Notes: generated by a model not told the origin, from the letters alone. Counted from the first letter of the stretch, positions 9,453 through 64,000 are shown. The stretch is 64,000 nucleotides of DNA from Octopus sinensis (GCF_006345805.1 NC_043009.1:930001-994000); one strand, 5' to 3'. A program made the numbers and translations.

Positions 9453-12400
9453 TATATACAATGAGCTTCTTTCAGTTTCCATCTATCAAATCCACTCACA
9501 TGGCTTTGGTCGGCCTGAGGCTATAGTAGAAGACATTTGCCCAATGTGCCACGCAGTGGGACTGAACCCGGAACCATGTGGTTCGTAAGCAAGCTACTTA
9601 CCACACAGCCACTCCTACACCTATTAATTCTACAGCTTACCTGTTGAGCTTGTTGGTCTGGTCATCTGGGCAGAATCTGTGAGAGTGACCACAGAAGTGT
9701 TACTACCCTGTGGTATGATATTAATTGTTGGCAATGCTCCCTGAGCAGTCTGAATGACATTCACCGATGGACGCGATTTCCCGTCAATCTGCAAAATTCC
9801 TTTGGTCGTTTGTACAGCTTTCCCAGTCAACTGAACTGGTTTACCACCAGACATTGGCTGCAAAATATTGCTACCTACAAAAACAAAGAAACAAGTTAAT
9901 AATTAACAACATGCTTTAATTAAAATGAAAGAAAATAAATCAGGTGTGGCTTTGTGGTCAGGGTATTCACCTTGTGATCACAAGGTTGTGAGTTTGATAG
10001 CTGACAGGACATTGAGTCCTTGAGCAAGACACTTTATTTCACATTGCTCCAGTCCATTGTGGAGTGTAATGTGCCACAAGCAGGCTGTTCTATTGATTGG
10101 ACCAACTGAAACCCTTGTCATTGCAACCAACAGTGTTAGTAAAAGAAAGAAAAAGAGGGTTAAATGTCTTGCAAGGTTCAGTTCCGTCCCTCTGCATTTC
10201 AAGCTCAAATCCTGCCACTGTTGACTTTTGCTATTAAAACCGTCTTCAGTGGTAAAATGGTTTAAGGATTGAATTATTCAACTAGTTCTGCTCTGTAGTA
10301 AAGATTGCTTGCTAACATTACATGGCAGTCCTGGTTTAGGACGAATGTTGCTGTAATTTAGCCCCAGGAGGCATCGTCTCCAGCTGGCTGTATGACACGA
10401 TCTGTGTCCTTACATTTTCGAACAAGGGAATCTAGCAGATCGTATCGTATAGCCAGCTGGAGACGTTGTCTCCTGGGACTAAATTACAGCAACATTCGTC
10501 CTAAACCAAGACTTCCATGTTATGTTGGCAAACAATCTTTATTACAAAGTACTGTTGCTCGATATTTCACGTGAGATTTAAAAACAGTAATTTCTAAAAA
10601 ATTTTCTGTACAAATTTCTGGAATAGTGTTAATGTACAACAGCAATAAAATTTGAAATAATGATAATTCTTTAAAAATAAAAGTGACTATGACAGCTCCT
10701 ACTACTATTAACCTCTATTTTTAATCAGTCCAACTTCTAATTTCTTTAATTATTCAGTGTCCCATATGACAACAGCCGCCACAGGTTTAGCATCAACTTT
10801 GACATGCTTGCATGGCTTGGGTGAAATTCATTGAGATTTTTCACAAGTGGATGCTCTTCCTGTTGCCAACCTTCATCAGTTTCCAAGCAGGCTAATATAT
10901 TTTCCTAGTCCAGACATGTTTTCACATAAGATTGTATATAACTGACACTACTTGTATAACAGTGATGTTCATTTACAATTAGTAGTGTGTAATATCACAA
11001 GGAAACACAGACATACACACATGCAGGATTCCTTTCAGTATCCATCTACCAGTTTCACTCACGATGCTTTAACTAGCTCAGGGCTACAGCAGAAAGAGAC
11101 TTGCCCAAGGTTAGGGTTAGGACTGAACTTGAAACCACAAGACTGTGAAGCAAACATCAGGTCCACACAGTGATGCAGATAATTATAATAATTCATTATT
11201 ACCTCTGCCTTAGCAAAAGCAGAGGTATTGTTTTCAGTGATGTTTGTTTGTTTGTCCATGGACAAGATATTTTAAGAACCGCTTGATGGAATCGGATGAA
11301 ACTTTCAGGGATGTTTGGCCTCATGACTCGCATGGACTGGTTAGAGTTTGGGACCAATCCAGTACCAGACAAGGATTTGAGATTATTTCTTATATTTACT
11401 TTACATGATTACGATCTTATGTTTGCTTTCAAGTCTTTCTCAATTATCTCCCTTTAGGCTGTTTCCAAAGTTTTCTTTTTGTTTCTCTATAATTAATTTT
11501 ACTCGCGTCTCTATCTTAGTAGAAACTGATGGATAAAGAAATCAAACTACATAAACAAATGACAGCAAAACCATTCAGAAATTAAATAACACTAACATAT
11601 TTTTATAATATATATATTACATATTATACATACATATTAACACTTTACAGTATACTTACATATATGCATACATCTATACATGGATCTAAAACAACAGGAA
11701 GGCCAGAATTGAAGAGAAGAGAAAACGAAAAAGCCTCACGTTATTCATTTAAAAATTCCAGAGTAGAACTGATTATTATGACCTCCACCTCTGAAACTAT
11801 TTTGAATGGGGAATTGGTTAAGTTTGGCTTCTTTTAGATAAGGATAAACTATTTATTACTGTTACTACATTTTCTACAGCCACCTTCACATTCCATGACT
11901 ACCATTGGGATCAATCAGGTACTGGACAAGGATTCTGGATTATTTTTCCGGTTTTTTTTTACTTAATTTTTGAGAGCGGTAGGGTTCATTTTTAGTACTC
12001 CCATTAGTGAGAGCAGTCGGGTTCATTTCAGATATTCTCATTTTAAAAATCATCTCTGGCTAATCGTTGAGAGGATGTTGGTGCTGCCTTGGCAGAGGTT
12101 TGCATTCTCTGAGTGCTGTTGTTGTTATTATTACCTCCGCCTTAGCGAAGGCAGAGGTATTGTTGGTTTGTTTATCTGTGGACAAGATATCTCAAGAACT
12201 GCTGGATGGCCTTGTGACTGGCACAAACTGATTAGATTTTGGGATCGGTCCGGTACCGGACAAGGATTCTGGATTATTTTCCAGGTTTTTTTTTTTTACT
12301 TAATTGCTGAGAGAAGTCAAGTTCATTCTATTTCAAATATCCTCATTTTAAAAAGTCATCTCTGGCTAATTGTTGAGAGGACATTGGTGTTGCTTTGGTG

Positions 12401-14174: not shown

Positions 14175-17100
14175 ATGTGTGGCAGGTTTGGTAGCCTTCA
14201 ACTACCACTATCTCCTCCAAGACCTTGCAGTGCAAGTTGACCAAAATTCAGAGTACGATAGAAGAAGGCTTGCTCTTCATTCTGTAGAAGAAAAAATTCA
14301 AATTGGACCATGTTAAGACCAAAATTTATTTACATCAAAAAGGTGCTTTTTTTTCTATGAAAATCCTTATTTTTTAACAATTTTTTCACTGCTGTGTTGC
14401 CATTTTTCGGTGTATTTCAACCAGAAAAATGTTCGCTTAAAGAGAATAACAAGCTACATAATGCAAAATTTTTACTTTTCAAAAAAGATTGAAACTATGT
14501 TAAAACTTTGTTAATGCGACATCAAAGTCTGACATTTTAAGTGCAACTAAAAAACAAACCTGAGCAACGTCGGGCTATACTGCTAGTAATAAATACTAGT
14601 AAAAATTTATTATATCATCATCTTAAATTTTTTATGAATATAATAATAGCACAAATTTAAAACTAATGCATCGTTCATTGTTCCCTTCATAGTTTTTAAC
14701 ATCCTCTGAAGGTGAAATATGAATAGGAGTGAAGGATAAAGACCCTTCCCAAGTCATATAGACTCATAGCACTGGTTTCTTGGTTTCCATGGTGTATATA
14801 TTGCCCATCCCCTGGACGGGATGCCAGTCCATTGCAGCATTATGCATTTTTGCCAGCTGAGTGAACGGGAGCAAAGTAAAATGAAGTGTTTTGCTCAAGA
14901 ACCCAACGCATTGCCCAGTAGCAGAATCGAAACCACAATCTTACAATCATGAGTGCAATACACTAACCACTTAGCCACGTGGCTCCAGTGAAATACAATC
15001 TCCTTTGGGAACCACTCGTCTGGAAAAAGGTGTAGTACCCATGACTTTTTTAGGCTGCCTGAGACTGGTAAGATTCATGCATTTAACATTCAAATCAAAT
15101 TCTACTCCGAAACAGGTGTAGAGAATTGCAGAGGGGCCAGCATCTTCAAAAGACCAGGAGTAATACTGCAGGGGTGGGGGGGTGACAAGAAGAGGTGCAG
15201 AGACAAAAGAGTCAGGAGAGCTTAGTGAAGGTGGGACAAGCCTAACCAACCCAATAGAGTAGAGGCTGCAATAGTAAAGGTAGAAAAGGCAGAGGGAGGA
15301 GACACAGTACGTCTGTGGGTCAGAGTTTAGAGTGTTTTAATCAGTCGAGCAGCCTCTTTCTCACTGAATGCAATCTAGGAAATGTGTGTGTGTTTCAGTG
15401 TGTAGTAACAGCAGCATCCCACAGCATGGAAACAGTATTCTGTTGTGGATCATAACTGAACTTTGAAGTGACTAAACACATGCATAGACTTCTCACTTGA
15501 TTATCCATGCCAGTACTCTACATAAATACACACACACAATCACAAAATTACATACACACACAAAGTTTGAATTATAATAATTATTTCTACTTGAAAATTT
15601 TGTGGGGTGGGGTGGGGCTAAGTGATTACATCAACCCCAGTGCATAACTGGTACTTATTTCGTCAACCTCGAAAGGATGAAAGGCAAAGTCAACCTCCAA
15701 GGAATTTGAACTCAGAACATCATGGCAGATAAAATACTGCTAAGCATTTTGCCCGGTGTGCTAATTATTCTGCCAGCTCACTGCCTTAGTCTGAATTATA
15801 ATAATGGTTTCAAATTTTGGCACCAGGCCAGTAAGTTTAGGGGAGCGGTTTTTGTTGTTTATATGAACAACCGTGCCCCCAGCTCTTAGGTGGTACTTAT
15901 TGTATCTACCTTGAAAGGATGAAAGGCAATGTCAAACTCAGCAAGATTTGAACTCAGAACATAAAGAGCCAGAAAAAATACCACTGAACATTTTGTCTGG
16001 CACCATAACAATTCGGTCAGCTCACCATTTTAACAGAACTTGTAATCATTATTTTCTTCCAAATGTCATAATTTGAAACATAGTGTGTGGTTAAAAAGTT
16101 TGTGTTGGCAACTATGTGGTTTTGGGTTCAGTCCCACAGCCTGGCAGCTTGGGTAAGTACCTTCTAATATGGCCCCAGGCTAACCAATGTTTTGTAAGTG
16201 GATTTGGCAGATGGAAATTGTGTGGAAGTCCATCATATAAATAGACACACACACACATATGTGTGTGCATATGTGTGGTTTGTTTATGTCACCGTGACTA
16301 AGCAATTCGGCAAGAGTGACCAACAAAATAAGTATCAGATTTTTAAAAATTATATGTGTATGGACGAGGACAGCTGCGTATGGATAAGGGCAGCTGTGTA
16401 TGGATGAGAACAGCTGCATATGGACGAGAACAGCAGCATATGGATGAGGGCATCTGTGTATGGATGAGGACTGATGTGTAAAGAAGTGCTGATCTTTAAC
16501 TATGGAGTGAACCTGTAAAAGAGGAAGACATGGGACAAGGTGGTGAACCATAATATTTGAACATTGAGCCTCATGGAGATGATGACAAACGACTGAGCCC
16601 TTTGGTGATATGCCGTGCTCGAGAAGACTCGTCAAGCCAATTGAAATCATAGTTGTAGGCAATGCCAGTGTCAAGTAAAAAGCAGCCATTACACTCTTGA
16701 AATGGTTGGTGTTAGGAAAGGCATTCAGCCATAGAAACCCTGGCAAATCAGACTGGAACTTGGTGCAGCTCTGGCTCACCATTTCCAGTCAAACCATCTA
16801 ACCCATGCAAGCATGGAAAGCAGACGCTAAATGATGAGGATGATGATGGTAAGGACTGGGGACAGTTTGTTTGACTAAACCCTTCAAGGCAGTGCTCCAG
16901 CATGGCCACAGGCCAACGACTGAGATAAGTAACAGGAAAAGTAGCCACAGAAGTAAAACATAATGTTGGATTTAGACCTGGATCTTTAATCCCACCATGC
17001 CAACCACCTTTGAATATTGACAAACAGAGAGTTGTCTACATGCTTGTTAGACTAGTTAGGAATATTTGCCAAACACCTTTAAACAGCACCCAACTATCTT

Positions 17101-17262: not shown

Positions 17263-20200
17263 GCTCTGTGCCCATACATGTATGTGACCATGCTAGCATA
17301 GAAAGTGGATGTTAAACGATGAGGATGATGATGATGGTGATAATGTGTGTATCTGTACCTTTGTGTGGGTGTCTGTGTGTATATGTGTTTGGCTGTGTGT
17401 ATGTGCATGTGTGTTTGAGTGTCTGTGCATGTTTGCATGCACGTGTGTGTGAAGTGTATGTGTATATGCTTGTGTGCATACGAGTGTGTATGTGTTCATG
17501 TTGTCAATGTAGATATGTACATGTCTGTGCAGCTGTGTCCAAGTGTGTGCATATGCATGTGTGTGCATGTGACTGCAAGTGTGTATGCGTATGCATGTGA
17601 GTGTGTGTGTGTATGCATGTGAGTGTGTGCGTGTGTGTGCATGTTTGTATAAACAATAAAAACAAAAAACAGCATGAGCATTACCTTGAATTTTTATGGT
17701 TGTTGGACCCGCAGACCCTGAAGTATTTTTCTGTGCAGCTCCGGTCAATAAGTTGCCAACTGACACCATTTGTGGACCGGAGACAAGTCTCGCAACCATG
17801 GGCGTGGCAGTAGTCGCAGTTGACACCGAGGTTCGGTTGGCTGTACTGAGAATGGTTTGTCCAGTCATCAGGGACTTACTACTATTCACACAAACAGCCG
17901 ACGTCACGTTGTGCTGTTGGTAAGGTAATAATTCCGGCTTGGATGTTATCACAACGGTAGCTTGGTGCAGTGAAGAGCCAGATACTGCCCCGCCAGATTT
18001 GGTCACTATCTGACCAGGCAAAAGGTTCAAAGAGACCGGTTTGGCAGTGGCGGTCGAAGTCCGTACCTGGCTAGCAACGGCGGGTGAGCCACTAGTTCCT
18101 GTGGCTTGAGAAGGCACGATGGCAAAAGTCAAAGGTTTCGACAAAGTCGACGCTGACGCTGCTATGGTTCCTTGCACATGCGTTCCGGAAGCTTGCGTCT
18201 GTGCTTTCGTAATTTCAGAAATTGGTATGGTGGTCAGAGTGCCGCTATTACCAATACTGGTCACCGAGTTGCTGCTACCAATGCTTGGCGCTTGAGCAAG
18301 ACTAAGATTAATCGTTGCAGGTTTAGCTGCACTCAGATTAGATTTTGGGCTTCCTTGTAAAGTTCGCGTTGTACTTGTAGCTACACGTGCATTTTGTGTG
18401 GGTTTGGGGGCCCTTGAGACCACGAGGTTTGGCATCGTAGGGATAACAGGTTCTTCAGGGTGTGCTGTACTGTCAGAGCTAGATACTGTGATGGAAGGCG
18501 AGGACTTTGAATTCTGTGCAGTTGATGATGATGCTGTTGTTATTGCTGTACTTGTAGGAACCATTTCTTTAGATTTCTGAAAAGAAGAAAAAAAAAGATA
18601 AGATTATATATTCTATCTTGTTGTACCCCAATCTTACATCTCTTCTTTTCTCTCTCTCTTTATTTCTTTCTCTCACCTTCCAGGTGAGTAAGCTATGTAT
18701 TCACCTCTTCAGCAAAACATCTGCTCCTCTCCCTCTATCATAGTTTCTTATTCCTCTAGTCTATACCCAGCTTAGTTGATGAAATTTTATCTTGCAAGCA
18801 CTTGGTGACCTCACCAGTACTGGTGCCACATAAAAAGCAATCAGTACACTCTGTTAACTGGTTGGCATTAGGAAGGGCATCCAGCTCTAAAAGCTATGCC
18901 AAAGTAGACACCTTCCCAAGCTTTTTGGCTTATTTGTGCTTGTCAAACTGTCCAACCCATGCCAGCATGAAAAAAAGGGCATGATGATGATTGATTGATT
19001 GATACATACATACATATTTATACACACACACACACATACACACACACACATAACATTGATAAATATTACCTTTTGGTATTAATAATGCTTCTGTTGCAAT
19101 TATTAAAAAAAAATAATTTTGTGTCATGAGGGCAAAGGGCCGATACCTTTGGCAATATGTCATGTAGGAGACACCTGTGCCAGTGGCACGTTGGGCCTCA
19201 AGGAGGTGATGAGTGACTGATACCTTTGGCAATATGTCATGCTTGAGAAGACCCGTCAAACCAAGTGAAACTGTAGACGCAGCTGATGCTGGTGTCACGT
19301 AGGAGACACCTGTGCCAGTGGCACGTTGGGCCTCAAGGAGGTGATGAGTGACTGATACCTTTGGCAATATGTCATGCTTGAGAAGACCCGTCAAACCAAG
19401 TGAAAATGTAGACGCAGCTGATGCTGGTGTCACGTGGGAGACACCTGTGCCAGTGGCACGTTGGGCCTCAAGGAGGTGATGAGTGACTGTTACCTTTGGC
19501 AATATGTCATGCTTGAGAAGACCCGTCAAACCAAGTGAAACTGTAGACGCAGCTGATGCTGGTGTCACGTAGGAGACACCTGTGCCAGTGGCACGTTGAG
19601 CCTCAAGGAGGTGATGAGTGACTGATACCTTTCGCAATATGTCATGCTTGAGAAGACCCGTCAAACAAAGTGAAACTGTAGACGCAGCTGATGCTGGTGT
19701 CACGTGGGAGACACCTGTGCCAGTGGCACGTTGGACCTCAAGAAGGTGATAAGTGACTGATACCTTTGGCAATATGTCATGCTTGAGAAGACCCGTCAAA
19801 CCAAGTGAAACTGTAGACGCAGCTGATGCTGGTGTCACGTACGAGACACCTGTGCCAGTGGCACGTTGGGCCTCAAGAAGGTGATAAGTGACTGATACCT
19901 TTGGCAATATGTCATGCTTGAGAAGACCCGTCAAACCAAGTGAAACTGTAGACGCAGCTGATGCTGGTGTCACGTGGGAGACACCTGTGCCAGTGGCACG
20001 TTGGACCTCAAGAAGGTGATAAGTGACTGATACCTTTGGCAATATGTCATGCTTGAGAAGACCCGTCAAACCAAGTGAAACTGTAGACGCAGCTGATGCT
20101 GGTGTCACGTAGGAGACACCTGTGCCAGTGGCACGTTGAGCCTCAAGGAGGTGATGAGTGACTGATACCTTTCGCAATATGTCATGCTTGAGAAGACCCG

Positions 20201-23200
20201 TCAAACCAAGTGAAACTGTAGACGCAGCTGATGCTGGTGTCACGTGGGAGACACCTGTGCCAGTGGCACGTTGGACCTCAAGAAGGTGATAAGTGACTGA
20301 TACCTTTGGCAATATGTCATGCTTGAGAAGACCCGTCAAACCAAGTGAAACTGTAGACGCAGCTGATGCTGGTGTCACGTACGAGACACCTGTGCCAGTG
20401 GCACGTTGGGCCTCAAGAAGGTGATAAGTGACTGATACCTTTGGCAATATGTCATGCTTGAGACGACCCGTCAAACCAAGTGAAACTGTAGACGCAGCTG
20501 ATGCTGGTGTCACGTGGGAGACACCTGTGCCAGTGGCACGTTGGGCCTCAAGAAGGTGATAAATGACTGATACCTTTGGCAATATGTCGTGCTTGAGAAG
20601 ACCCGTCAAACCAAGTGAAACTGTAGACGCAGCTGATGCTGGTGTCACGTGGGAGACACCTGTGCCAGTGACACGTTGGGCCTCAAGGAGGTGATGAGTG
20701 ACTGATACCTTTGGCAATATGTCATGCTTGAGAAGACCCGTCAAACCAAGTGAAACTGTAGACGCAGCTGATGCTGGTGTCACGTAGGAGACACCTGTGC
20801 CAGTGACACGTTGGGCCTCAAGGAGGTGATGAGTGACTGATACTTTGGCAATATGTCATGCTTGAGAAGACCCGTCAAACCAAGTGAAACTGTAGACGCA
20901 GCTGATGCTGGTGTCACGTAGGAGACACCTGTGCCAGTGGCACGTTGGGCCTCGAGGAGGTGATGAGTGACTGATACCTTTGGCAATATGTCATGCTTGA
21001 GAAGACCCGTCAAACCAAGTGAAACTGTAGACGCAGCTGATGCTGGTGTCACGTAGGAGACCTGTGCCAGTGGCACGTTGGGCCTCAAGGAGGTGATGAG
21101 TGACTGATACCTTTGGCAATATGTCATGCTTGAGAAGACCCGTCAAACCAAGTGAAACTGTAGACGCAGCTGATGCTGGTGTCACGTATGAGACACCTGT
21201 GCCAGTGGCACGTTGAGCCTCAAGGAGGTGATGAGTGACTGATACCTTTGGCAATATGTCATGCTTGAGAAGACCCGTCAAACCAAGTGAAACTGTAGAC
21301 GCAGCTGATGCTGGTGTCACATGGGAGACACCTGTGCCAGTGGCACGTTGAGCCTCAAGGAGGTGATGAGTGACTGATACCATTGGCAATATGTCATGCT
21401 TGAGAAGACCCGTCAAACCAAGTGAAACTGTAGACGCAGCTGATGCTGGTGTCACGTATGAGACACCTGTGCCAGTGACACGTTGGGCCTCAAGGAGGTG
21501 ATGAGTGACTGATACCTTTGGCAATATGTCATGCTTGAGAAGACCCGTCAAACCAAGTGAAACTGTAGACGCAGCTGATGCTGGTGTCACGTAGGAGACA
21601 CCTGTGCCAGTGGCACGTTGGGCCTCGAGGAGGTGATGAGTGACTGATACCTTTGGCAATATGTCATGCTTGAGAAGACCCGTCAAACCAAGTGAAACTG
21701 TAGACGCAGCTGATGCTGGTGTCACGTGGGAGACACCTGTGCCAGTGGCACGTTGGGCCTCAAGGAGGTGATGAGTGACTGATACCTTTGGCAATATGTC
21801 ATGCTTGAGAAGACCCGTCAAACCAAGTGAAACTGTAGACACAGCTGATGTTGGTGTCACGTAGGAGACACCTGTGCCAGTGGGACGTTGGGCTTCAAGG
21901 AGGTGATGAGTGACTGATACCTTTGGCAATATGTCATGCTTGAGAAGACCCGTCAAACCAAGTGAAACTGTAGACGCAGCTGATGCTGGTGTCACGTGGG
22001 AGACACCTGTGCCAGTGGAACGTTGGGCCTCAAGAAGGTGATAAGTGACTGATACCTTTGGCAATATGTCATGCTTGAGAAGACCCGTCAAACCAAGTGA
22101 AACTGTAGACGCAGCTGATGCTGGTGTCACGTGGGAGACACCTGTGCCAGTGGCACGTTGGGCCTCAAGGAGGTGATGAGTGACTGATACCTTTGGCAAT
22201 ATGTCATGCTTGAGAAGACCCGTCAAACCAAGTGAAACTGTAGACGCAGCTGATGCTGGTGTCACGTGGGAGACACCTGTGCCAGTGGCACGTTGGGCCT
22301 CAAGGAGGTGATGAGTGACTGATACCTTTGGCAATATGTCATGCTTGAGAAGACCCGTCAAACCAAGTGAAACTGTAGACGCAGCTGATGCTGGTGTCAC
22401 GTAGGAGACACCTGTGCCAGTGGCACGTTGAGCCTCAAGGAGGTGATGAGTGACTGATACCTTTGGCAATATGTCATGCTTGAGGAGACCCGTCAAACCA
22501 AATGAAACTGTAGACGCAGCTGATGCTGGTGTCACGTAAGAGACACCTGTGCCAGTGGCACGTTGAGCCTCAAGGAGGTGATTAGTGACTGATACCTTTG
22601 GCAATATGTCATGCTTGAGAAGACCCGTCAAACCAAGTGAAACTGTAGACGCAGCTGATGCTGGTGTCACGTAAGAGACACCTGTGCCAGTGGCACGTTG
22701 AGCCTCAAGGAGGTGATGAGTGACTGATACCTTTGGCAATATGTCATGCTTGAGAAGACCCGTCAAACCAAGTGAAACTGTAGACGCAGCTGATGCTGGT
22801 GTCACGTGGGAGACACCTTTGCCAGTGGCACGTTGGGCCTCAAAGAGGTGATAAGTGACTGATACCTTTGGCAATATGTCATGCTTGAGAAGACCCGTCA
22901 AACCAAGTGAAACTGTAGACGCAGCTGATGCTGGTGTCACGTAGGAGACACCTGTGCCAGTGGCACGTTGGGCCTCAAGGAGGTGATGAGTGACTGATAC
23001 CTTTGGCAATATGTCATGCTTGAGAAGACCCGTCAAACCAAGTGAAACTGTAGACGCAGCTGATGCTGGTGTCACGTGGGAGACACCTGTGCCAGTGGCA
23101 CGTTGGGCCTCAAGAAGGTGATAAGTGACTGATACCTTTGGCAATATGTCATGCTTGAGAAGACCCGTCAAACCAAGTGAAACTGTAGACGCAGCTGATG

Positions 23201-26200
23201 CTGGTGTCACGTGGGAGACACCTGTGCCAGTGGCACGTTGGGCCTCAAGAAGGTGATAAGTGACTGATACCTTGGCAATATGTCATGCTTGAGAAGATGT
23301 CATGCTTGAGAAGACCCGTCAAACCAAGTGAAACTGTAGACGCAGCTGATGCTGGTGTCACGTAGGAGACACCTGTGCCAGTGGGACGTTGAGCCTCAAG
23401 GAGGTGATAAGTGACTGATACCTTTGGCAATATGTCATGCTTGAGAAGACCCGTCAAACAAGTGAAACTGTAGACGCAGCTGATGCTGGTGTCACGTAGG
23501 AGACACCTGTGCCAGTGGCACGTTGAGCCTCAAGGAGGTGATGAGTGACTGATACCTTTGGCAATATGTCATGCTTGAGAAGACCCGTCAAACCAAGTGA
23601 AACTGTAGACGCAGCTGATGCTGGTGTCACGTAGGAGACACCTGTGCCAGTGGCACGTTGAGCCTCAAGGAGGTGATGAGTGACTGATACCTTTGGCAAT
23701 ATGTCATGCTTGAGAAGACCCGTCAAACCAAGTGAAACTGTAGACGCAGCTGATGCTGGTGTCACGTACGAGACACCTGTGCCAGTGGCACGTTGGGCCT
23801 CAAGAAGGTGATGAGTGACTGATACCTTTGGCAATATGTCATGCTTGAGAAGACCCATCAAACCAAGTGAAACTGTAGACGCAGCTGATGCTGGTGTCAC
23901 GTAGGAGACACCTGTGCCAGTGGCACGTTGAGCCTCAAGGAGGTGATGAGTGACTGATACCTTTGGCAATATGTCATGCTTGAGAAGACCCGTCAAACCA
24001 AGTGAAACTGTAGACGCAGCTGATGCTGGTGTCACGTAGGAGACACCTGTGCCAGTGGCACGTTGAGCCTCAAGGAGGTGATGAGTGACTGATACCTTTG
24101 GCAATATGTCATGCTTGAGAAGACCCGTCAAACCAAGTGAAACTGTAGACGCAGCTGATGCTGGTGTCACGTAGGAGACACCTGTGCCAGTGGAACGTTG
24201 AGCCTCAAGGAGGTGATGAGTGACTGATACCTTTGGCAATATGTCATGCTTGAGAAGACCCGTCAAACCAAGTGAAACTGTAGACGCAGCTGATGCTGGT
24301 GTCACGTAGGAGACACCTGTGCCAGTGGCACGTTGAGCCTCAAGGAGGTGATGAGTGACTGATACCTTTGGCAATATGTCATGCTTGAGAAGACCCATCA
24401 AACCAAGTGAAACTGTAGACGCAGCTGATGCTGGTGTCACGTAGGAGACACCTGTGCCAGTGGCACGTTGGGCCTCAAGGAGGTGATGAGTGACTGATAC
24501 CTTTGGCAATATGTCATGCTTGAGAAGACCCGTCAAACCAAGTGAAACTGTAGACGCAGCTGATGCTGGTGTCACGTAGGAGACACCTGTGCCAGTGGCA
24601 CGTGGGCCTCAAGGAGGTGATGAGTGACTGATACCTTTGGCAATATGTCATGCTTGAGAAGACCCGTCAAACCAAGTGAAACTGTAGACGCAGCTGATGC
24701 TGGTGTCACGTAGGAGACACCTGTGCCAGTGGCACGTTGGGCCTCAAGGAGGTGATGAGTGACTGATACCTTTGGCAATATGTCATGCTTGAGAAGACCC
24801 GTCAAACCAAGTGAAACTGTAGACGCAGCTGATGCTGGTGTCACGTGGGAGACACCTGTGCCAGTGGCACGTTGGGCCTCAAGGAGGTGATGAGTGACTG
24901 ATACCTTTGGCAATATGTCATGCTTGAGAAGACCCGTCAAACCAAGTGAAACTGTAGACGCAGCTGATGCTGGTGTCACGTAGGAGACACCTGTGCCAGT
25001 GGCACGTTGGGCCTCAAGGAGGTGATGAGTGACTGATACCTTTGGCAATATGTCATGCTTGAGAAGACCCGTCAAACCAAGTGAAACTGTAGACGCAGCT
25101 GATGCTGGTGTCACGTAGGAGACACCTGTGCCAGTGGCACGTTGGGCCTCAAGGAGGTGATGAGTGACTGATACCTTTGGCAATATGTCATGCTTGAGAA
25201 GACCCGTCAAACCAAGTGAAACTGTAGTCGCAGCTGATGCTGGTGTCACGTGGGAGACACCTGTGCCAGTGGCACGTTGGGCCTCAAGGAGGTGATGAGT
25301 GACTGATACCTTTGGCAATATGTCATGCTTGAGAAGACCCGTCAAACCAAGTGAAACTGTAGACGCAGCTGATGCTGGTGTCACGTAGGAGACACCTGTG
25401 CCAGTGGCACGTTGGGCCTCAAGGAGGTGATGAGTGACTGATACCTTTGGCAATATGTCATGCTTGAGAAGACCCGTCAACCAAGTGAAACTGTAGACGC
25501 AGCTGATGCTGGTGTCACGTAGGAGACACCTGTGCCAGTGGCACGTTGGGCCTCAAGGAGGTGATGAGTGACTGATACCTTTGGCAATATGTCATGCTTG
25601 AGAAGACCCGTCAAACCAAGTGAAACTGTAGACGCAGCTGATGCTGGTGTCACGTAGGAGACACCTGTGCCAGTGGCACGTTGGGCCTCAGGAGGTGATG
25701 AGTGACTGATACCTTTGGCAATATGTCATGCTTGAGAAGACCCGTCAAACCAAGTGAAACTGTAGACGCAGCTGATGCTGGTGTCACGTAGGAGACACCT
25801 GTGCCAGTGGCACGTTGGGCCTCAAGGAGGTGATGAGTGACTGATACCTTTCGCAATATGTCATGCTTGAGAAGACCCGTCAAACCAAGTGAAACTGTAG
25901 ACGCAGCTGATGCTGGTGTCACGTAGGAGACACCTGTGCCAGTGGCACGTTGGGCCTCAAGGAGGTGATGAGTGACTGATACCTTTGGCAATATGTCATG
26001 CTTGAGAAGACCCGTCAAACCAAGTGAAACTGTAGACGCAGCTGATGCTGGTGTCACGTAGGAGACACCTGTGCCAGTGGCACGTTGGGCCTCAAAGAGG
26101 TGATAAGTGACTGATACCTTTGGCAATATGTCATGCTTGAGAAGACCCGTCAAACCAAGTGAAACTGTAGACGCAGCTGATGCTGGTGTCACGTAGGAGA

Positions 26201-29200
26201 CACCTGTGCCAGTGGCACGTTGAGCCTCAAGGAGGTGATGAGTGACTGATACCTTTGGCAATATGTCATGCTTGAGAAGACCCGTCAAACCAAGTGAAAC
26301 TGTAGACGCAGCTGATGCTGGTGTCACATGGGAGACACCTGTGCCAGTGGCACGTTGGGCCTCAAGGAGGTGATAAGTGACTGATACCTTTGGCAATATG
26401 TCATGCTTGAGAAGACCCGTCAAACCAAGTGAAACTGTAGACGCAGCTGATGCTGGTGTCACGTAGGAGACACCTGTGCCAGTGGCACGTTGAGCCTCAA
26501 AGAGGTGATAAGTGACTGATACCTTTGGCAATATGTCATGCTTGAGAAGACCCGTCAAACCAAGTGAAACTGTAGACGCAGCTGATGCTGGTGTCACGTA
26601 GGAGACACCTGTGCCAGTGGCACGTTGGGCCTCAAGGAGGTGATGAGTGACTGATACCTTTGGCAATATGTCATGCTTGAGAAGACCCGTCAAACCAAGT
26701 GAAACTGTAGACGCAGCTGATGCTGGTGTCACGTAGGAGACACCTGTGCCAGTGGCACGTTGAGCCTCAAGGAGGTGATGAGTGACTGATACCTTTGGCA
26801 ATATGTCATGCTTGAGAAGACCCGTCAAACCAAGTGAAACTGTAGACACAGCTGATGTTGGTGTCACGTAGGAGACACCTGTGCCAGTGGAACGTTGGGC
26901 CTCAAGAAGGTGATAAGTGACTGATACCTTTGGCAATATGTCATGCTTGAGAAGACCCCTCAAACCAAGTGAAACTGTAGACGCAGCTGATGCTGGTGTC
27001 ACGTAGGAGACACCTGTGCCAGTGGCACGTTGGGCCTCAAGGAGGTGATGAGTGACTGATACCTTTGGCAATATGTCATGCTTGAGAAGACCCGTCAAAC
27101 CAAGTGAAACTGTAGACGCAGCTGATGCTGGTGTCACGTAGGAGACACCTGTGCCAGTGGCACGTTGAGCCTCAAGGAGGTGATGAGTGACTGATACCTT
27201 TGGCAATATGTCATGCTTGAGAAGACCCGTCAAACCAAGTGAAACTGTAGACACAGCTGATGTTGGTGTCACGTAGGAGACACCTGTGCCAGTGGCACGT
27301 CGGGCCTCAAGGAGGTGATGAGTGACTGATACCTTTGGCAATATGTCATGCTTGAGAAGACCCATCAAACCAAGTGGTTGGTAAGCAAGCTATTTACCAC
27401 ACAGCCACTCCTACGCCTATAATGTTCAATATCATTTTACAGTTAAATCAAAGTAAAAAAAAAAAAACTTACAGATTTGCTAGATTTCGGTTTTTGTAAA
27501 GATTTCTTGGCTTTTACAGCTGCTCCCTGAGCTTGGTGAATTTTTTCTGAAATTATGAAGAAAAAGAAATGAGAAGCACAAAGCATTTACGAGAGTAAAA
27601 ATAATTTTCAAGGATAGCAGAAAGAAATAAAACATTGAAAATTTTACATGAAAAAGCACCCATGCTGGCGTTACATATAAAAGCACCTTGTACACTCTGT
27701 AAAGTGGTTGGCATTAGGAAAGGCATCCAGCCGTAGAAACAGACGACTGGAACCTAGTGCAGCCCTCTGGCTTGCCAGCTCCTGTCAAAGAGTCCAACCC
27801 ATGCCAGCATGGAAAACAAACATTAAATGATTATGATGATGGTGGTGATGATGATGGCATTAATAAACTGATGAAAAATTTTTTAATTATTTTTCATTTT
27901 TTTAACTTAAGATTCAGCAACTTCTTTGCGCATGGCCCACACGTATACCATATCAAACTTTATGGATAAAAATATCTGCATAAATCCTCTGATATTCATC
28001 ATTGGCAATGTTTGCAACACAAAAGAAAACCTGAAAGCTGTCATCTGCAGGCTGTTTCATTGACTAGATCATAGAGTGCCAGTTTTATACCAAATTTCAC
28101 AAATAAAACTTTGCTGGCACCACTGCTTCCTATGCTCAATGGCCTTCAAATACATAAAATTTGAAAAAATAAAGATCTCAGAAAACAGTTGAGGACCAGA
28201 TTTTTCCATTTCTTTGTGCTACCTCACTACACCTGTCTTGATAGCTGGAAAGGCCTTTTCTGTTTGTATTGTATTGTTTTAGTACTGTCTATGTATAATT
28301 ATTCCTTTTGCTTATTGTACAACCGTAAAGCATTTTCTATTGTGTATGTACCATTCCTTGCCTGTCGTATCGTCATTATTTCTTATTGTACACGCAATGT
28401 TATTTTGTCCTGTCCTTGCACACATTCATCAGCTTTTTCTGTAGCTCTATGCTCTGGTGCTCCTGTTAGATAACAGTGGTCTTGCTTTAAATAATGGGAA
28501 AACACTAATGGGAAAGTCAGCTGCAAATGTTCCTTGTAGCGTGTTTTTGTCCAGTTTTCCCTTCTCTATCTAACTTTTGATTATATATATATATATATAT
28601 ATATCATCATCGTTTAACGTCCGCTTTCCGCGCTAGCACGGGTTGGACGGTTCGACCGGGTCTGGGAAGCCAGGGGCCGCTCCAGGCTCCAGTCTGAATC
28701 TGGCAGAGTTTCTACGGCTGGATGCCCTTCCTAACGCCAACCACTCCGTGAGTGGATTGGGTGCTTTTTACGTGCCACCTGCACAGGGGCCGGAGGGTCC
28801 GGCATCGGTCACGATCGGTTCGAGCTTTTAACGTGTCAGCGGCACGGGGGCAACGAGGTCTGGGGTACTTTGGGGATCCAGGGTACTTTGGGGATCCGGG
28901 GTACTTAGAATGGGTAGGGAGTATGTGGAATTGCTGCAGAAAGCAGCCCGGGTCTTTGTAGTCACAGCATATCTCCAGAGATCTCGGTCCTTCGCCATTG
29001 CCTCAGTGAGGCCCAATGCTCTGAGGTCATGCTTGACTACCTCATCCCATGTCTTCCTGGGTCTACCTCTCCCCCTGATACCTTCAACTGTTTGGGAGTG
29101 GCACTTCTTCACACATCTCTCTTCATCCATCCGCAGCACATGACCATACCATCGCAAGCGTCGCTCTTGCACACCACATCTGATGCTTCTTATATCCAGC

Positions 29201-32200
29201 ATTTCTCTCAGGATGCTTACACTCTGTCTTGCGTGCACACTGACACTACACATCCAGCGGATCATGCTAGCTTCATTTCTTTCAAGTCTACGCATGTCTT
29301 CTGCAGTCACAGCCCATGTTTCATTACCGTGAAGCATGGCAGTTCGCACACATGCATCATACAATCTACCTTTTGCTCTGAGGGAGAGACCTTTTGTTGC
29401 CAGTAGGGGTAGGAGCTTTCTGAACTTTGCCCAGGCTATTCGTATTCTAGTGGTGATACTCTCTGTGCATCCACCTCCGCTACTAACTTGGTCACCCAGG
29501 TAGCGGAAACTATCAACTACTTCTAGTTTCTCTCCCTGGAGTGTGATGGAATCTGTTTTCTGAGTGTCTGTTGTGTCTATTGTCCCTGTGCATCTGCCGC
29601 ACATGAAAGCTATCTTCTCGGTTAATTTTCCTTTGATGTTGCTGCACCTCTTATGTGTCCATAACTTACATTGGGTGCATCTTATGGAGTTTCTACCTGT
29701 ACCTTTCCTACAGGTTGAGCAGGGCCACCTACCCGAGGGGGTGTATGCTGAGTACCTCTTGCTGCTTACTAATACTTTGGTCTTTGCTACATTTATTCTA
29801 AGGCCCTTTGATTCCAACCCTTGCTTCCACACCCGAAATTTCTCTTCTAGTTCCGGTAGTGATTCTGCTATGAGAGCTAGGTCATCGGCATAGAGGAGCT
29901 CCCAGGGGCATCCCGTTTTGAATTCCTCTGTTATTGCCTGAAGGACTATGATGAATAAAAGGGGACTGAGGGCTGAGCCCTGGTGCACACCTACTTCTAC
30001 CTGGAATTCTTCACTATATTCGTTGCCAATCCTAACCTTGCTGACAGCCTCTCTGTATAGAGCCTGTACAGCCCTTATTAGCCATTCTTCAATCTCCAGT
30101 TTCCGCATCGACCACCAGATAAGGGAACGGGGAACCCTGTCAAAGGCTTTCTCCAAGTCTACAAAAGCTATGTAGAGGGGTTTATCTTTAGCTAGGTACT
30201 TCTCCTGCAGTTGTCGGACCAGGAATATAGCATCAGTGGTGCTTCTACCTGGTACAAAACCGAACTGCATTTCATCTAAACAAATTCTCTCCCTAATGAG
30301 ATTGGTTATGACCTTCTCTGAGACCTTCATCACCTGGTCCAACAGTTTGATACCTCTGTAGTTATTTCTATCTAGAGCATCACCCTTACCCTTGTAGCAG
30401 TTGACTATGGTGCTGCTGCACCAGTCATTGGGTATGACTCCATTGTGAACTACCTGGTTTACAATGCGGGTGACTATGGCATAGCCCACATAGCCAGCTG
30501 TTTTAAGCATCTCAGCAGTGATTCCTGATAGGCCAGGGGCTTTGCCTGGTTTCATATCCTTAATTGCCTTATCTACAAGGGAGCTGTCTATTCGGGTAGC
30601 TGGTCCCTCTACTGGGTCAACATTTGGCAGGCTCTCCTCCTCCCATTCATTCTCCTCATTCAGCAGTCTTTCATAATGGCTTCTCCAAGCCTCTTTCTTT
30701 TCACTAGTAGTAAAAGCAAGTGCCCCATCATCCATGCGGACACATTTCTCTCCTATAACATCGCTATTTTCTCTGACACACTGTCTGGCAATCCGAAATA
30801 CTTCAGCTCTTTGATCCTCGCGACGCTGGACATTGGCAAACTTCTTCTTTTCTGCTACATCTTTGGCAATGTATACCTGCCGCCCAGCCTCCCTTTTGGC
30901 TATCTGGTACAGTTCCCTGCTGCCCCCATCCTTCCAGGCTTTCCAGGCCCGTCTCTTTTCACAGATGGCTTTATCTACTGCACTATTCCACCACCACGTA
31001 ATTCTAGGTCTGGAAGGGACTTTGCACCATCCACAGACTTGGTCTGTGGCACTCAGCAAGCTGTCCCGTAGGAATTCCCAGCTACCTTCTATGTCTGACG
31101 TCTGAAGCTCCTCCTCCCTCTCATCAAATTTCTTGATGAGTATGTCCCTAAATTTCTGACCGTGCGAAGGGTTCTTTAGCCTCCAAATCCTTCTTTTCTG
31201 GATTGGTTTGTTTCTTGGAGTCCATCTGGCCTCAAGCTTAAAGTCACTCATGATTAGTCTATGCTGAGGGATACATTCTTCACCCGGGAGGGTCTTTGTA
31301 TTCAAGAGCAACCCTGCATCCCGTTGTCTGGTGAGGATGAAGTCTATTTGGCTAGCGGAGTCTCCTGACTGATAAGTTATAAGGTGGCAGACTGGCTTCT
31401 TGAAGTTAGTGTTGCAGATTGAAAGGTTACATGCATCACAGAATTCCAGCAGTCTAGTTCCCTCATCATTTCTGGTGCCAATACCATAGCCACCATGTAC
31501 CCCAGTGAAGATACCCGATTCCCGCCCAACATGCCCATTAAAATCTCCACCTACAAAGATGAGGTCCTTGTTACTAGTCTTTGAAGTAGCCTGCAGAAGG
31601 GTATCATAAAAGTTGTCCTTCTGATCATTTGGTAGTCCCGCTTGTGGGACATAGGCTGAGATAATCATAGCTGTGCCACTCTGTAGGACCAACCTGAGCT
31701 TAAGCACTCTATCACAAACCCTGACAACCTCTATGACCTTATCCACCCATTCCTCCGCAAGGAGAATGCCTACACCCCCTACACCTTCCGCGTTACCTTG
31801 CCAGTAGAGTTTGTACCTAAGTGCCTTGTCCGTGAGGACCCTAGCCGAAGCATCTCTCCATCTTACCTCTTGTATGCAGCATACATCAACCTGTCTTCTC
31901 TCTAGCATCTCTACAATCTCACTAGACTTGCCTGTCAATGTACCAACATTGATAGTGCCAACTCTGAAAACTGGGAAGGAGATGTGGGGGGGATGGGGGG
32001 GATTCGTCGCCTGAGAAGAGGAGGGTTGTTGTGGTGGTGATAGTTTTCGTGGTATTTTTCTTTTGATCTCTCTTCCAACCTGACCACGCCGTGGGCAGGA
32101 GCTGGTGTTAGCAGTGGACATTCGTTATATATATATATATACATCATCACCCAATGTCCGTTTTCCATGCTGGCATGGGCTGGATGGTTTCACTGAGGTC

Positions 32201-32551
32201 TGGAGAGCCAACAGCTGCACCAGGCTCCAATCTGATCTGGCAAGGTTTCTACAGCTGGATGCCCTTCCCAACGCCAACCACACCAAGAGTGTAGTGGATA
32301 CTTTTTATGTGCCACTGGCAGAGGAGCCAGTCAGGTGGGCCTGGCATCGATCATGTTCGGATGGTGCTTTTTACGTACCAACAGCAGGGGAGCCAGTCAA
32401 GCAGACCTGATATCAACCACATTTGAATGGTGCTTTTTACATGTCACTGGCACAGGAGCCAGTCTGGGGGTACTGGCATCGACCATATTCAGTTGGTGCT
32501 TTTTACAGGAACCAGTCAGGCAGACCTGGTATCAACCATGTTCGGATGGTA

Positions 32552-32605: not shown

Positions 32606-35600
32606 ATATATAAATATATATAAATATATATACATACATACACACACACATATATATACAAACATACATATACATAAACACACACACACACACGACTTAC
32701 ATGGCTAATATAGCTACAGTAACCTCTTTTGTGATATAAAAGTGCTTGAACATCTATCCTATAATTTGCTTTACTTTTTCCACATTAGGTAATATTTCCC
32801 CATAGCCGAACATGGTTTTGCAGAATATTGGAAATGAATGATAAGGCTTGTATAAATAGACATTCATCTACAACTATCATATGATGCCAATACAAAGAGA
32901 ACACAAACAGGCTTCTTTCAGTTTCCATCAACCAGATCCACTCACTATGCCCAGTGCTATAGTAGAAGATGCTTGCTCAAGGGGCCACACAGTGGAGCTG
33001 TACTTGAAACCATGTGGTTTGCAAGCAATCTTCTTAACCATACTCTCTCACCTGTGCTTATAAATCTATCTATTGTCGGTGGGTGGACCCGATAAACAAA
33101 ACCAAAATGATATTTATAATGAAATAAATCCCCCCAAAAAATTTTAAATAAAAAAATACAATAATAAAAAACCCCCAGCAATTACCAAATTCTTGTTCGG
33201 TTCGACTTCGATGTAAATAGATCCATAATTTCCTGTTCACGTCGTACTTTACACACGGGTCTTTCTCATAATGTAATCGATCCAAAGCACCACTAACCAC
33301 TGTGTTTATCTGTAAACAAAACTAAATATGTCAACTTCCGGACCAGAAAAAGAACAATTTACAACAAATTCTCAACCAATAAATCAGTCAAACAATTTTG
33401 TTTTATAATTATATTTCAGAAATGATAATTTTGTTTTACTTGCCAAATAAACACACGCACTATATATTCGTTCTTCACTGCATGTGTGTGTGAGCTTGCC
33501 CACAACACTGTTTGTATTCATGCCCCTTATATAGTTGTTACCATTATTGTTGTTGTTCTTAGTGGTACCAATACTTGGTATGTTGATTATCCCTTTGCCT
33601 ACATTTTCTCTTTTGCTGTTGGCTTTTCCCCTACAAAATGGTGAATTATTATCCTAATTCTTTCTACTATAAGTACAAGGGCTGAAATTTTGGCTGGCGG
33701 GAACTAGATGATTATATTCACCTCAGTGCTCAACCAGTACTTATTTGAACAACTCTGAAAGGATGAAAACCAAAGTCAACCTCGCCTGCATTTGAACTCA
33801 GAAGGTAAAGCCAGAAAAATACTACTAAGCTAACGATTCTGCCAGCTTGCTACCTTAAATAGTAGTAGTAGTAGTATGTTTTGTCTTGGTATAAAAGATG
33901 GGCTACAGCAAATATTCTGCTCAGTACCACAGATTTGCTTGTCAGTTGTTTGACCGTAACCAGTTGAGCATGTCCCTTAGTGACTGACGATATGTGCATC
34001 TCTGATCACGAGCAGAAGTAGTGGGGGAGCATCATAGCCATGTGTTGAGAGGGATTCTTTGGGGTTTGAATAATTCACCTCTGGAAACATGGGTGTTTCG
34101 TTCAACATCCTTAAACAACCCTTATTCAAGGAACATCTGAGTGGGATGGGCTACTCGACCTGAGCAAAATTCTAATTGGGCCCCACCTGTAAGGCCATGC
34201 ACTGTTTATCTTGATATGAAATCATCATGTTACACACATTTGGTTGTGTACCCTTATTAGACAGGTAGTCACGATGGGTACACTGGGCTTTGTAGTATTT
34301 TACCCCCGTGTCACTTTGATGTTATGCACTACTCTCTCACTCAATAATAATAATTCTTTCTACTATAGGCACAAATTTGAGGGGACAGGGACTTGTCAGT
34401 TATATTCATCTCAGGGCTCAACTTTTACTTGTTTTATTGATCCTGAAAGTATGAAACACAAAGTCAGCCTCAACAGAATTCGATCTTGGAATGCAAAGAT
34501 GAATTAAATGCTACTAAGCATAGTGCAAATCTCCGCCAAGGCAACACCAACGTCCTCTCAACGATTAACCAGAGAGGATTTTTAAAATGAGAATATCTTA
34601 AATAAACTTGACTGTTCTCACTAATGGGAATACTAAAAATAAACCCAACAGCTCTCAAAAATTAAGTAAAAAATCAGGAAAAATAATCCAGAATCCTTGT
34701 CAGGTACTGGATCAATCCCAAAATCTAATCAATCCATGCCAGTCACGAGGCCTAACATCCCTGAAAGTTCCATCTGAATCCATCTCGTGGTTCTTGAGAT
34801 ATCTTGTCTACGGACAAACAAACAAACAAACATGACAGAAAACAATACCTCTGCCTTCGCTAAGGCAAAGGTAATAATAATAAATTTTTCTATAAGGTCT
34901 GAAATTTTGAGTGAGGGGCACAGTTGATTGCATCAACCCCAGTATTTAACTGGTACTTTATTTTATTGACCCAGGAAGGAATAAGAGGTAAAGTCGACCT
35001 CAGCAGGATTTGAACTGAAAATGTAAAGATCTAGAAGACATACTATAAATCATTTGTTTCCAAGACTCTAACGATTCTGCTAGCTTGCTGTATTTAGATG
35101 TGCTTACCTGTGCATCTGTAATGCCTGGCGCTAAGAACTGCGAATCCTTCAGCAACTCACAAATGTCCCCACGAGTTCCTTCACCGTTAGGTAAACGAGC
35201 AGCAGCATCTCGTACTATCAAAAAACAACAACATTACATTAATTATTATCATTTTCTTTCCAACAACGAGACATCCAATCAAAACAGCCACAAATCATAT
35301 CAATGATATATTTTCCTCTTTTATTTCTAGTAACAATGCACAGAATAAGGACAAATCATGGAACAATTTATCATTTTCGCTCAGATTAACCCTTTCATTA
35401 CCAACCCAGCTGAAACCGGATCTGGCTCTGAGTACAAATGTCCTTTTTTCATAAGTTTTGAATTAAAATCTTCCACCAAACCTTAGTCACAATTTAAGTT
35501 CCTAACACTAGCTTAATGATAACGAAGTTATTTTACTAAATTCTTTGTTATATTTAAAATTAATTGAAAGAAACACAGAGCAGCTCAAAATAAATACAGT

Positions 35601-63930: not shown

Positions 63931-64000
63931 ATGATGACGACAAAGATGACTATACTGATGACGAATTTGAGAGAGAGCAAAGAGATACCGGTCAACTGAT

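Follow-up and report, generated by a model that had tools for sequence, protein, structure and literature searches.

How does a gene intron come to hold 8.2 kb of a single unit repeated in tandem, and where did that unit come from? The 64,000-nucleotide stretch of the Octopus sinensis genome analysed here (the window) raises this question at positions 19142–27376, where 60 full 135-bp units and a truncated unit at each end followed each other head to tail and, over 8,235 bp, amounted to 61 copies of the repeat (Table 1). Tandem Repeats Finder (TRF) placed the repeat at 19158–27376 (period 135, 60.8 copies, 96% matches, score 15164). BLAST with one unit recovered the 60 full units between 19191 and 27299, of which 53 measured 135 bp, five 134 bp, one 133 bp and one 151 bp. 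The consensus of the full unit was TTGGGCCTCAAGGAGGTGATGAGTGACTGATACCTTTGGCAATATGTCATGCTTGAGAAGACCCGTCAAACCAAGTGAAACTGTAGACGCAGCTGATGCTGGTGTCACGTAGGAGACACCTGTGCCAGTGGCACG. The array was highly homogeneous, with 31 variable sites and a mean pairwise difference of 2.5% (97.5% mean pairwise identity), and its unit, above 100 bp in length, recurred head to tail across several kilobases. These results confirmed the array given by a first-pass annotation, which had also described the units as near-identical. Its unit translation, the C-termini of both LINEs, the ACGT motifs and the splice junction 27473/18576 were all found as quoted.

Table 1. Position and strand of the array, its parts and the surrounding features in the window.
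Feature	Position	Strand	Remarks
LINE 3' fragment, 5'-truncated	16500–16830	+	Nearest relative of the repeat unit within the window
Predicted NFRKB intron, 8,896 bp	18577–27472	-	Based on splice consensus and continuity of the reading frame
Old 3'-tail fragment of the same LINE/SINE family, then microsatellites	18808–18990	+	CpG observed/expected 0; context, separate from the array
First, defective unit (49 bp)	19142–19190	+	Unit positions 29–51 fused to 110–135
Full units (n = 60), 135-bp repeat	19191–27299	+	LINE-sense, antisense to NFRKB
Block duplication	19596–20675	+	Units m04–m06 versus m08–m10 differ by 1, 0 and 1 positions
17-bp micro-duplication, ATGTCATGCTTGAGAAG x2.1	23280–23314	+	Creates the single 151-bp unit
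Most homogeneous stretch, units m40–m51	24468–26084	+	Mean pairwise difference 1.3 positions
Last unit (77 bp)	27300–27376	+	Truncated within the former stop codon (unit position 77)
Head of a short interspersed repeat, right flank	27377–27420	-	Remainder of the repeat missing
Full-length RTE-like LINE, intact 1097-aa ORF	28600–32125	-	Endonuclease, reverse transcriptase, PHD-like Cys-rich motif
Second LINE copy, frame-shifted, runs past the window end	60400–63999	-	Unit positions 1–125 align to ORF end and UTR

The host gene is read on the minus strand. Its match to WH_2nd_NFRKB (4e-36), together with NFRKB_winged, confirmed the annotated identity as NFRKB, which we take to be a broadly expressed chromatin gene of the INO80 complex. 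No cephalopod was among the matches of the winged-helix query, the best of which was Lottia gigantea with 84% identity, and the search for homologues of the Ser/Thr-rich exon gave no match, low-complexity candidates having probably crowded out the true ones. The predicted intron opens at the donor CAAATCT/GTAAGT, closes at the acceptor TTTTCAG/AAATCT and is in phase 0 at both boundaries. The array was located where the annotation had put it, with the winged-helix exons on one side and the Ser/Thr-rich exon on the other; it starts 96 bp past the donor and represents 92.6% of the 8,896-bp intron, which measures approximately 0.66 kb without the array and 8.9 kb with it, a 13-fold enlargement. 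The NFRKB pre-mRNA would carry, from this point past the predicted donor, 61 antisense copies of a LINE tail.

The strand shared with NFRKB contains minus-strand ORFs of 302–739 aa, and the unit length equals 3 x 45, so that a 45-aa repeat encoding a repetitive protein or an exon could be imagined. We attach next to no probability to this reading. At least one open frame of the six is expected in about 50% of random 135-bp units ((61/64)^45 = 0.115 per frame). A strong donor terminates the upstream exon, and read-through meets a stop. Coding potential was rejected, the frame being broken by seven indel-bearing units and a search of 5.8 billion sequences having found no protein homologue of the array ORF. 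The array is without sign of function, and its effects so far are structural. It seems very unlikely that it represents a very recent, locus-specific, possibly copy-number-polymorphic expansion with a gained role; if it did, antisense LINE 3'-end RNA could feed piRNA/siRNA against the parent RTE subfamily, and the repeated hairpin-containing units near the donor could modulate NFRKB splicing or elongation.

The origin of the unit was visible in its sequence. It corresponds to a contiguous segment of a LINE 3' end, namely the last ~25 codons with their stop, followed by 57 nt of 3'UTR up to GTGGCACGT, a conserved 3'UTR motif of the LINE family which marks the UTR end of the unit. The BLAST match to the LINE fragment at 16564–16677 (E=7e-15) had 73.7% identity over 114 bp and 79% over the 80 bp of ORF end, compared to 54–68% between any two family copies. 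Four copies of the family aligned with unit positions 1–111 or 1–125, from the ORF end through the stop into the proximal UTR. The unit is thus significantly homologous to a specific part of the element, and these alignments bear out the annotation's derivation of the unit from the ORF end and proximal 3'UTR of the LINEs in the window. The source element is an RTE-like LINE, the clade name being taken from architecture and literature. A single 1097-aa ORF holds Exo_endo_phos and RVT_1 in an element of ~3.5 kb, the architecture of the RTE clade with an N-terminal AP-type endonuclease ahead of the reverse transcriptase, and is comparable to RTE-2_OV (1109 aa; endonuclease, reverse transcriptase and zinc finger; PMC9115989); an exact look-up of the 1097-aa ORF returned no record. 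At ~28600 the LINE tail is closed by (AT)n and at ~60370–60400 by (ATG/ATC)n, which are non-poly(A) simple-repeat 3' ends as in RTE elements. The simple repeat at ~28600 terminates the tail of the full-length copy, whose 3'UTR carries GGTGGCACGTAAAAAGCACC.

A CGA-to-TGA change of the unit was also present in the fragment at 16500–16830. Because this CpG-decay change puts a stop within the former reading frame of the unit, the progenitor LINE copy was already decayed and dead when it was amplified. We consider it likely, overall, that the tandem array is non-coding, that its unit came from an RTE-like LINE 3' end and that it was amplified from such a dead copy.

Joining these units required a junction. 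The 24-mer CCAGTGGCACGTTGGGCCTCAAGG spanning it (up to 3 mismatches allowed) occurred 60 times, always within the array, with 0 occurrences expected from shuffles. The junction, GGCACGT followed by TGGGCCTC, was absent from the remaining 55.8 kb of the window and is new compared to the LINE copies there, none of which has it. The LINE copies read ACGT, ACAT or GCAT before TTGGGCCTC-type codons and GGCAC(G/A)T before AAAAAGC in their UTRs. A microhomology of 3–5 nt at the junction is plausible, since the UTR motif GTGGCACGT is joined to the ORF where the LINE copies read ACGT, ACAT or GCAT; the ACGT microhomology put forward by the annotation stands at this strength. We infer its length from these copies, the true parent subfamily being absent from the window.

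The 3' region of this LINE family is prone to tandem duplication, since other copies contain 63–66-bp tandem repeats in their UTRs (261–587, 32301–32507 and 60544–60702). Expansion of a 135-bp repeat already in tandem inside the element found no support in the family copies of the window, a sample of four only, which show 63–66-bp repeats and no 135-bp junction. Two 6-bp hairpins flank the junction, but a special single-strand structure of the unit was rejected, the fold energy being equal to that of shuffles (z=0.04). A retrozyme or other ribozyme-bearing repeat found no support in Rfam, which at gathering thresholds gave 0 matches to any ribozyme or other RNA family in the whole window.

The variants recorded how the array grew. 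The units inside one duplicated block (m04–m06 or m08–m10) differ from each other by 3–8 positions, compared to the 1, 0 and 1 positions between the corresponding units of the two blocks, a value reached in 11 of 2000 permutations in a test chosen post hoc. This indicates the duplication of a 3–4-unit block by multi-unit unequal exchange or slippage. Shared variants were clustered along the array and, with the block duplication, point to unequal exchange or slippage at the DNA level. The run of 12 near-identical units m40–m51 is probably the latest expansion. Higher-order repeat organisation was rejected, as TRF detected no such period across the array save a local 151-bp row due to the 17-bp micro-duplication, and divergence scarcely grew with lag.

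The same variants bear on an origin by reverse transcription, in which the LINE enzyme would have switched template repeatedly at ACGT, or a small circular RNA would have been copied by rolling circle, in one event. Such enzymes are known to switch template at microhomologies, and the left end of the array looks like a 5' truncation. The variant spectrum is strand-biased, with 13 G>A sites against 2 C>T sites on the LINE-sense strand (p=0.017), as editing of first-strand cDNA would give; the G>A sites have, however, no deaminase-like sequence context. Non-adjacent units share high-frequency variants and a 3–4-unit block is duplicated, neither of which is given by independent copying errors. 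The obligatory LINE tail and simple-repeat end on the 3' side are absent, and the lack of any ribozyme or other RNA family in the window also speaks against this origin. We regard this origin as highly improbable. The G>A bias is not predicted by local amplification. Long-term transcription asymmetry was discarded as its cause, the rest of the window being almost without compositional skew.

Both edges of the array look remodelled. The first unit has lost 58 bp internally, between the direct repeats GTCATG and GTCACG, and the left end, which begins at unit position 29, cannot be the original 5' end of the founder. On the right the array meets the short interspersed repeat across the near-identical AACCA(A/T)GTG (AACCAWGTG). 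Other copies of this repeat lie at 9581–9624 (93% identity), 51520–51555 and 38044–38073; the label tRNA-derived was not applied, as a tRNA scan of the SINE-like heads recognised none. Insertion of the array into this repeat was rejected, the rest of the repeat having been sought on the left side of the array and not found. The left-flank sequence TGTGTCATGAGGGCAAAGGGCC was suspected by eye to be a relic of the founder LINE and was discarded, as local alignment of 19070–19141 with a unit dimer and four LINE ends gave scores within the range of shuffles. The tail at 18808–18990 was rejected as the missing half of the founder given its permuted order, its complete CpG depletion and its 72–84% similarity to other tails, and is treated as an independent old insertion upstream of the array.

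No parental LINE continued beyond the array on either side, including the right, where its 3' tail was expected and a different repeat was present. The flanks do not support the annotation's satellite birth in situ, which needs at least two later deletions because no parental LINE flanks the array. It is conceivable that a dispersed satellite family was born elsewhere and that a multi-unit piece of it was imported via eccDNA or microhomology, maybe growing further here. The unit positions at which the array breaks off against unrelated flanks, 29 and 77, are arbitrary, the parental LINE is missing, the right junction uses a short homology, and euchromatic satellites have spread in such a way in Drosophila (PMC7403614). 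A linearised circle should, however, give the same register at both ends, which positions 29 and 77 do not show, and the right-flank repeat is truncated with its remainder absent on the left, so that no simple insertion took place. No further copy of the junction exists in the remaining 55.8 kb of the window, and unit patterns gave 0 matches in metagenome (two scans) and viral contigs (one scan), collections which say little about the source organism. Import appears unlikely to us, and we favour amplification at the NFRKB site.

The amplification looks recent, unlike its source sequence, which had already decayed. No interspersed repeat has inserted within the 8.2-kb array, compared to 19 loci with LINE tails and as many as 23 SINE-like ones in the other 55.8 kb of the window. 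Counting ~30–40 of these loci as real insertions, ~4–6 would be expected in the array and the Poisson probability of finding none is ~0.003–0.02. This absence and the mean pairwise difference of 2.5% underlie the recent date. The CpG observed/expected ratio of the array, 0.47, was mildly higher than in the rest of the window (0.36). The qualification "very young" given by the annotation fits the amplification and not the source, since the progenitor had already decayed to the CGA-to-TGA stop and CpG is only mildly higher.

Could the array, or its length, be an assembly artefact? Copy number is often imprecise in assembled arrays. Five of the six deletion-bearing units lost one base in a homopolymer of 2–3 nt, the sixth lost two (AC), and there were no small insertions in the units, a pattern like that of long-read consensus errors. 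Against this, the variants at 31 sites are distributed in a structured, non-random way, with a block duplication and variant clusters, and the array passes cleanly into unique flanks on both sides, with neither gaps nor N. An artefact is accordingly highly improbable.

We propose the following sequence of events. A first tandem duplication would have connected the UTR motif to the ORF again through 3–5 nt of microhomology ((C)ACGT), by template switching during replication or by microhomology-mediated end joining. The dimer may then have grown to ~61 units by unequal exchange between sister chromatids or homologues and by replication slippage, often in multi-unit register. Short-homology deletions would later have trimmed both edges.

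The term "rare" in the annotation was overstated, as reviews list satellites derived from LINE ORF ends and 3'UTRs (PMC9659126, PMC12628747), known LINE-derived cases being found in chicken (CR1) and cetaceans (L1). In cephalopod genomes, the literature search found no description of satellite DNA. The locus offers a well-resolved passage from LINE ORF end and 3'UTR to tandem array, with exact unit bounds, an identifiable founding junction, stepwise block duplication and remodelled edges. Should the array be locus-specific and vary among individuals or between sister species, the early growth of a satellite could be timed with it, and it could show whether a 13-fold intron enlargement beside a splice donor costs an INO80-complex gene.

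In the chicken CR1 satellite, as here, the unit is a LINE ORF end plus 3'UTR amplified head to tail; the LINE clade (CR1 versus RTE-like) and the phylum differ, and here one 8.2-kb intronic array is known. The common satellite of cetaceans likewise made an L1 3'-terminal segment tandem, but it occurs in many species as an abundant family in heterochromatin, whereas the NFRKB array is one euchromatic intronic array with 97.5% identity (PMC9659126). In the satellites from the hypervariable 3'UTR of plant Ogre LTR-retrotransposons (PisTR-A), the source 3'UTR already bears short tandem repeats, and one breakpoint of the NFRKB unit similarly lies at the repeat-prone UTR motif of the LINE family. 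Unlike PisTR-A, the 135-bp unit spans the ORF–UTR boundary and needed a new junction, and is not a pre-existing UTR repeat that expanded (PMC7004042, PMC9659126). The Drosophila euchromatic satellites formed via microhomology and circular DNA share the short euchromatic arrays and the junction microhomology; they have spread, whereas the NFRKB array was seen at one locus within the window (PMC7403614). Tandems produced by double insertion of a transposable element also draw their satellite substrate from such elements (PMC5932611), but the NFRKB array is not a product of this process because its unit has no LINE tail. The known route of satellite origin is unchanged by this array, which is a clean new example of it.

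The tandem array of 135-bp units that the first-pass annotation had placed at 19142-27376 was recovered with the same coordinates by Tandem Repeats Finder and by BLAST with one unit. Tandem Repeats Finder gave a period of 135 over 19158-27376 (60.8 copies, 96% matches, score 15164), and BLAST delimited 60 full units across 19191-27299, with lengths of 135 bp (53 units), 134 bp (five), 133 bp (one) and 151 bp (one). Together with a partial unit at each end, the array covered 8,235 bp. A 24-mer spanning the unit junction, searched in the window with up to three mismatches, occurred 60 times, always within the array, and never in shuffles. The GC content was 51%, against 41% for the whole window. 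It is very unlikely that the array is an assembly artefact.

The array lies in an intron of NFRKB, as first annotated. Minus-strand exons matched the Pfam domains WH_2nd_NFRKB (4.4e-36) and NFRKB_winged (9e-13 and 5e-11). The nearest database protein was that of the limpet Lottia gigantea, 84% identical across the second winged-helix domain; the protein database matches included no cephalopod NFRKB entry. This match places the source among the molluscs, and its repeat content suggests a cephalopod. We infer the 27473/18576 splice junction, in phase 0 on both sides, solely from consensus sequences. The resulting intron would measure 8,896 bp. The array, antisense to the gene and starting 96 bp past the donor, makes up 92.6% of it. 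Stop-free minus-strand stretches within 33073-52346 also look like NFRKB exons.

Coordinates of the array ends, the neighbouring LINE and repeat, and NFRKB features in the window
Feature	Position	Strand	Details
First unit, partial	19142-19190		49 bp
Last unit, partial	27300-27376		77 bp
Interspersed repeat head	27377-27420	minus	93% identity to 9581-9624
Full-length RTE-like LINE	28600-32125	minus	endonuclease, reverse transcriptase, PHD-like motif
Intact LINE ORF	28828-32121	minus	1097 aa
Upstream exon end / putative donor	27473	minus	CAAATCT/GTAAGT, phase 0
Ser/Thr-rich exon start / putative acceptor	18576	minus	TTTTCAG/AAATCT, phase 0
NFRKB exon candidates	41493-41320, 40066-39737, 35233-35003, 33321-33073	minus	Pfam NFRKB matches
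NFRKB exon candidates	52346-52170, 48906-48646, 45069-44746	minus	stop-free stretches only, outside Pfam scan

The LINE family of the window has a single ORF with an AP-endonuclease, a reverse transcriptase and a Cys-rich PHD-like motif, and its tails terminate in simple repeats. This agrees with an octopus RTE-clade element whose 1109-aa ORF contains an endonuclease, a reverse transcriptase and a zinc finger (PMC9115989), the likeness being one of architecture and not a phylogenetic placement. The full-length copy, which may be active, lies 1.2 kb away from the array, in sense orientation within the neighbouring NFRKB intron, and its 5' end adjoins another element's tail (32130-32507).

Read on the plus strand, the unit is TTG GGC CTC ... 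AAG TGA: 25 codons that include an internal TGA, then a stop, followed by 57 nt terminating in CCTGTGCCAGTGGCACG. The proposed homology to the RTE ORF C-terminus and 3'UTR held: positions 1-111 matched the 5'-truncated LINE fragment 16564-16677 (73.7% identity, E=7e-15, BLAST), positions 1-125 aligned with the ORF end and UTR at ~60,900-61,020, and further alignments were found with the copies at 42923-42981 and ~28,930-29,017. Over the 80 bp of the ORF end, the unit was 79% identical to the 16564 fragment, whereas the family copies of the window were only 54-68% identical to each other; the unit is thus a family member, but its own subfamily parent is absent from the window. At the D-R-D site the LINEs read GAC CGA GAC/GAT and the unit GAC TGA TAC. 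This CpG transition, also carried by the 16564 fragment, makes a stop, so that the progenitor copy was already dead prior to amplification. A 20-bp minisatellite (6.3 copies, 16355-16480) lies directly upstream of that fragment. The unit has a 45-aa open frame on the minus strand, but by our own calculation a random unit has a ~50% chance of such a frame, which is not significant; it is broken in seven indel-bearing units and has no homologue, and a coding repeat is hardly credible.

Each unit ends in ...GTGGCACG and the following one starts with TTGGGCCTC. At the corresponding breakpoints the LINEs read GGACGT/TAGGTCTC, GAGCAT/TGGGCCTC or GAACAT/TGAGCCTC on the ORF side and GGCACGT/AAAAAGC or GGCACAT/AAAA on the UTR side. 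Because the two sides read alike, the ACGT-mediated duplication first suggested is plausible, in the form of a UTR motif that would have been rejoined to the ORF at a 3-5 nt microhomology, (C)AC(G/A)T; we infer this from the LINE copies in place of the actual parent. Two 6-bp hairpins adjoin the junction, but the fold of the whole unit is no more stable than that of shuffles. The UTR junction motif is also the boundary of 63-66-bp tandem repeats found by Tandem Repeats Finder in other LINE 3'UTRs (261-587, 32301-32507 and 60544-60702). At these loci and at 49445-49628 the repeats were variable, with 2.5-4 copies anchored on GGTGGCAC(G/A)TAAAAAGCACC, and one LINE tail among them showed tandem duplication of a 100-bp unit (x1.8). 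As read from its copies, the 3' region of the family is generally prone to tandem duplication and has repeatedly been made tandem.

Ten units were identical to the consensus. The mean distance to the consensus was 2.3 positions and the mean pairwise distance 3.4 of 135 (2.5%). Four common variants were clustered (position 4 G/A, 13 G/A, 21 G/A and 111 A/G). Numbering full units in order, m04-m06 recurred as m08-m10 with 1, 0 and 1 differences, against 3-8 between units within each block, a match reached by only 11 of 2000 permutations in a test picked post hoc. Units m40-m51 were near-identical (mean pairwise difference 1.3), and a 17-bp micro-duplication was present. Together these features point to growth by DNA-level unequal exchange or slippage, which would have expanded the array in steps of one or several units. 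One burst of independent copying errors does not fit them. Six units had small deletions (20811-21077, 23389-23522, 24468-24602 and 25412-25814), five of a single base within a homopolymer run of 2-3 nt and one of two bases (AC), with no small insertion in any unit; these could be long-read consensus errors instead of real variants.

The variants were strand-biased (Fisher p=0.017 on sites). Across 19191-27299, plus-strand G>A occurred at 13 sites (65 cells) and C>T at 2 (4 cells); A>G occurred at 4 sites and T>C at none. At the CpG positions of the unit, G varied at 3 of 4 and C at 0 of 4. Compositional skew was nearly absent from the rest of the window. The surplus of G>A over C>T on the LINE-sense strand, and a left end resembling a 5' truncation, would suit an array made by reverse transcriptase, an extremely unlikely origin given that the LINE tail is missing, variants are common to several units, a block is duplicated and no deaminase-like context surrounds the G>A sites.

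The array contained no interspersed repeat in its 8.2 kb. The remaining 55.8 kb held 19 LINE-tail loci and up to 23 SINE-like repeat loci; taking ~30-40 as real insertions, ~4-6 would be expected in the array (Poisson P(0) ~0.003-0.02). Amplification is recent compared with most of the transposon activity at the locus. The very young age initially claimed is borne out to this extent, near-identical units included, but its CpG argument is weak, with an observed/expected ratio of 0.47 for the array against 0.36 for the remainder of the window and 0.41 and 0.50 for the two LINEs.

The first unit begins at unit position 29 and has lost 58 bp between GTCATG and GTCACG; the left flank (19070-19141) showed no similarity to the unit or the LINEs beyond chance. 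The last unit ends at position 77, fused across AACCA(A/T)GTG, found in both partners, to the head of a different, SINE-like interspersed repeat. The remainder of this repeat was absent from both sides of the array, and no LINE tail lies 3' of it. A partial tandem duplication of the same repeat occurs at 59694-59922 (119 bp x1.9), and ARAGORN recognised no copy as tRNA-like. The LINE tail fragment at 18808-18990, upstream of the array and fully CpG-depleted, is best interpreted as an old, independent insertion. With an unrelated left flank, another repeat on the right and the LINE tail missing, birth in place from a resident LINE is not demonstrated. It would require later deletions at the edges, which is not far-fetched since one deletion, from the last unit to the neighbouring repeat, would suffice to take away the LINE tail along with the repeat body. 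The main alternative, import of a ready-made member of a dispersed family, is unlikely: the register of the array differs between its two ends, and the target repeat is not split in any simple way.

The first-pass observation is confirmed; support for its interpretation is partial. The array has the three defining features, tandem structure, transposable-element homology and a new junction; as it is known here from one window, "satellite" in the strict sense of genomic abundance is unproven. Our literature search found no description of cephalopod satellites. The array is a clean, datable example of LINE-end tandem amplification, and would be of more interest if locus-specific and polymorphic. 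It is a new example of a mode of origin already known, since satellites derived from the untranslated regions and ORF ends of LINEs are listed in reviews (PMC9659126, PMC12628747). It works like these LINE-derived satellites and like those derived from the 3'UTR of the plant element Ogre, with which it shares the link to a repeat-prone UTR (PMC7004042).
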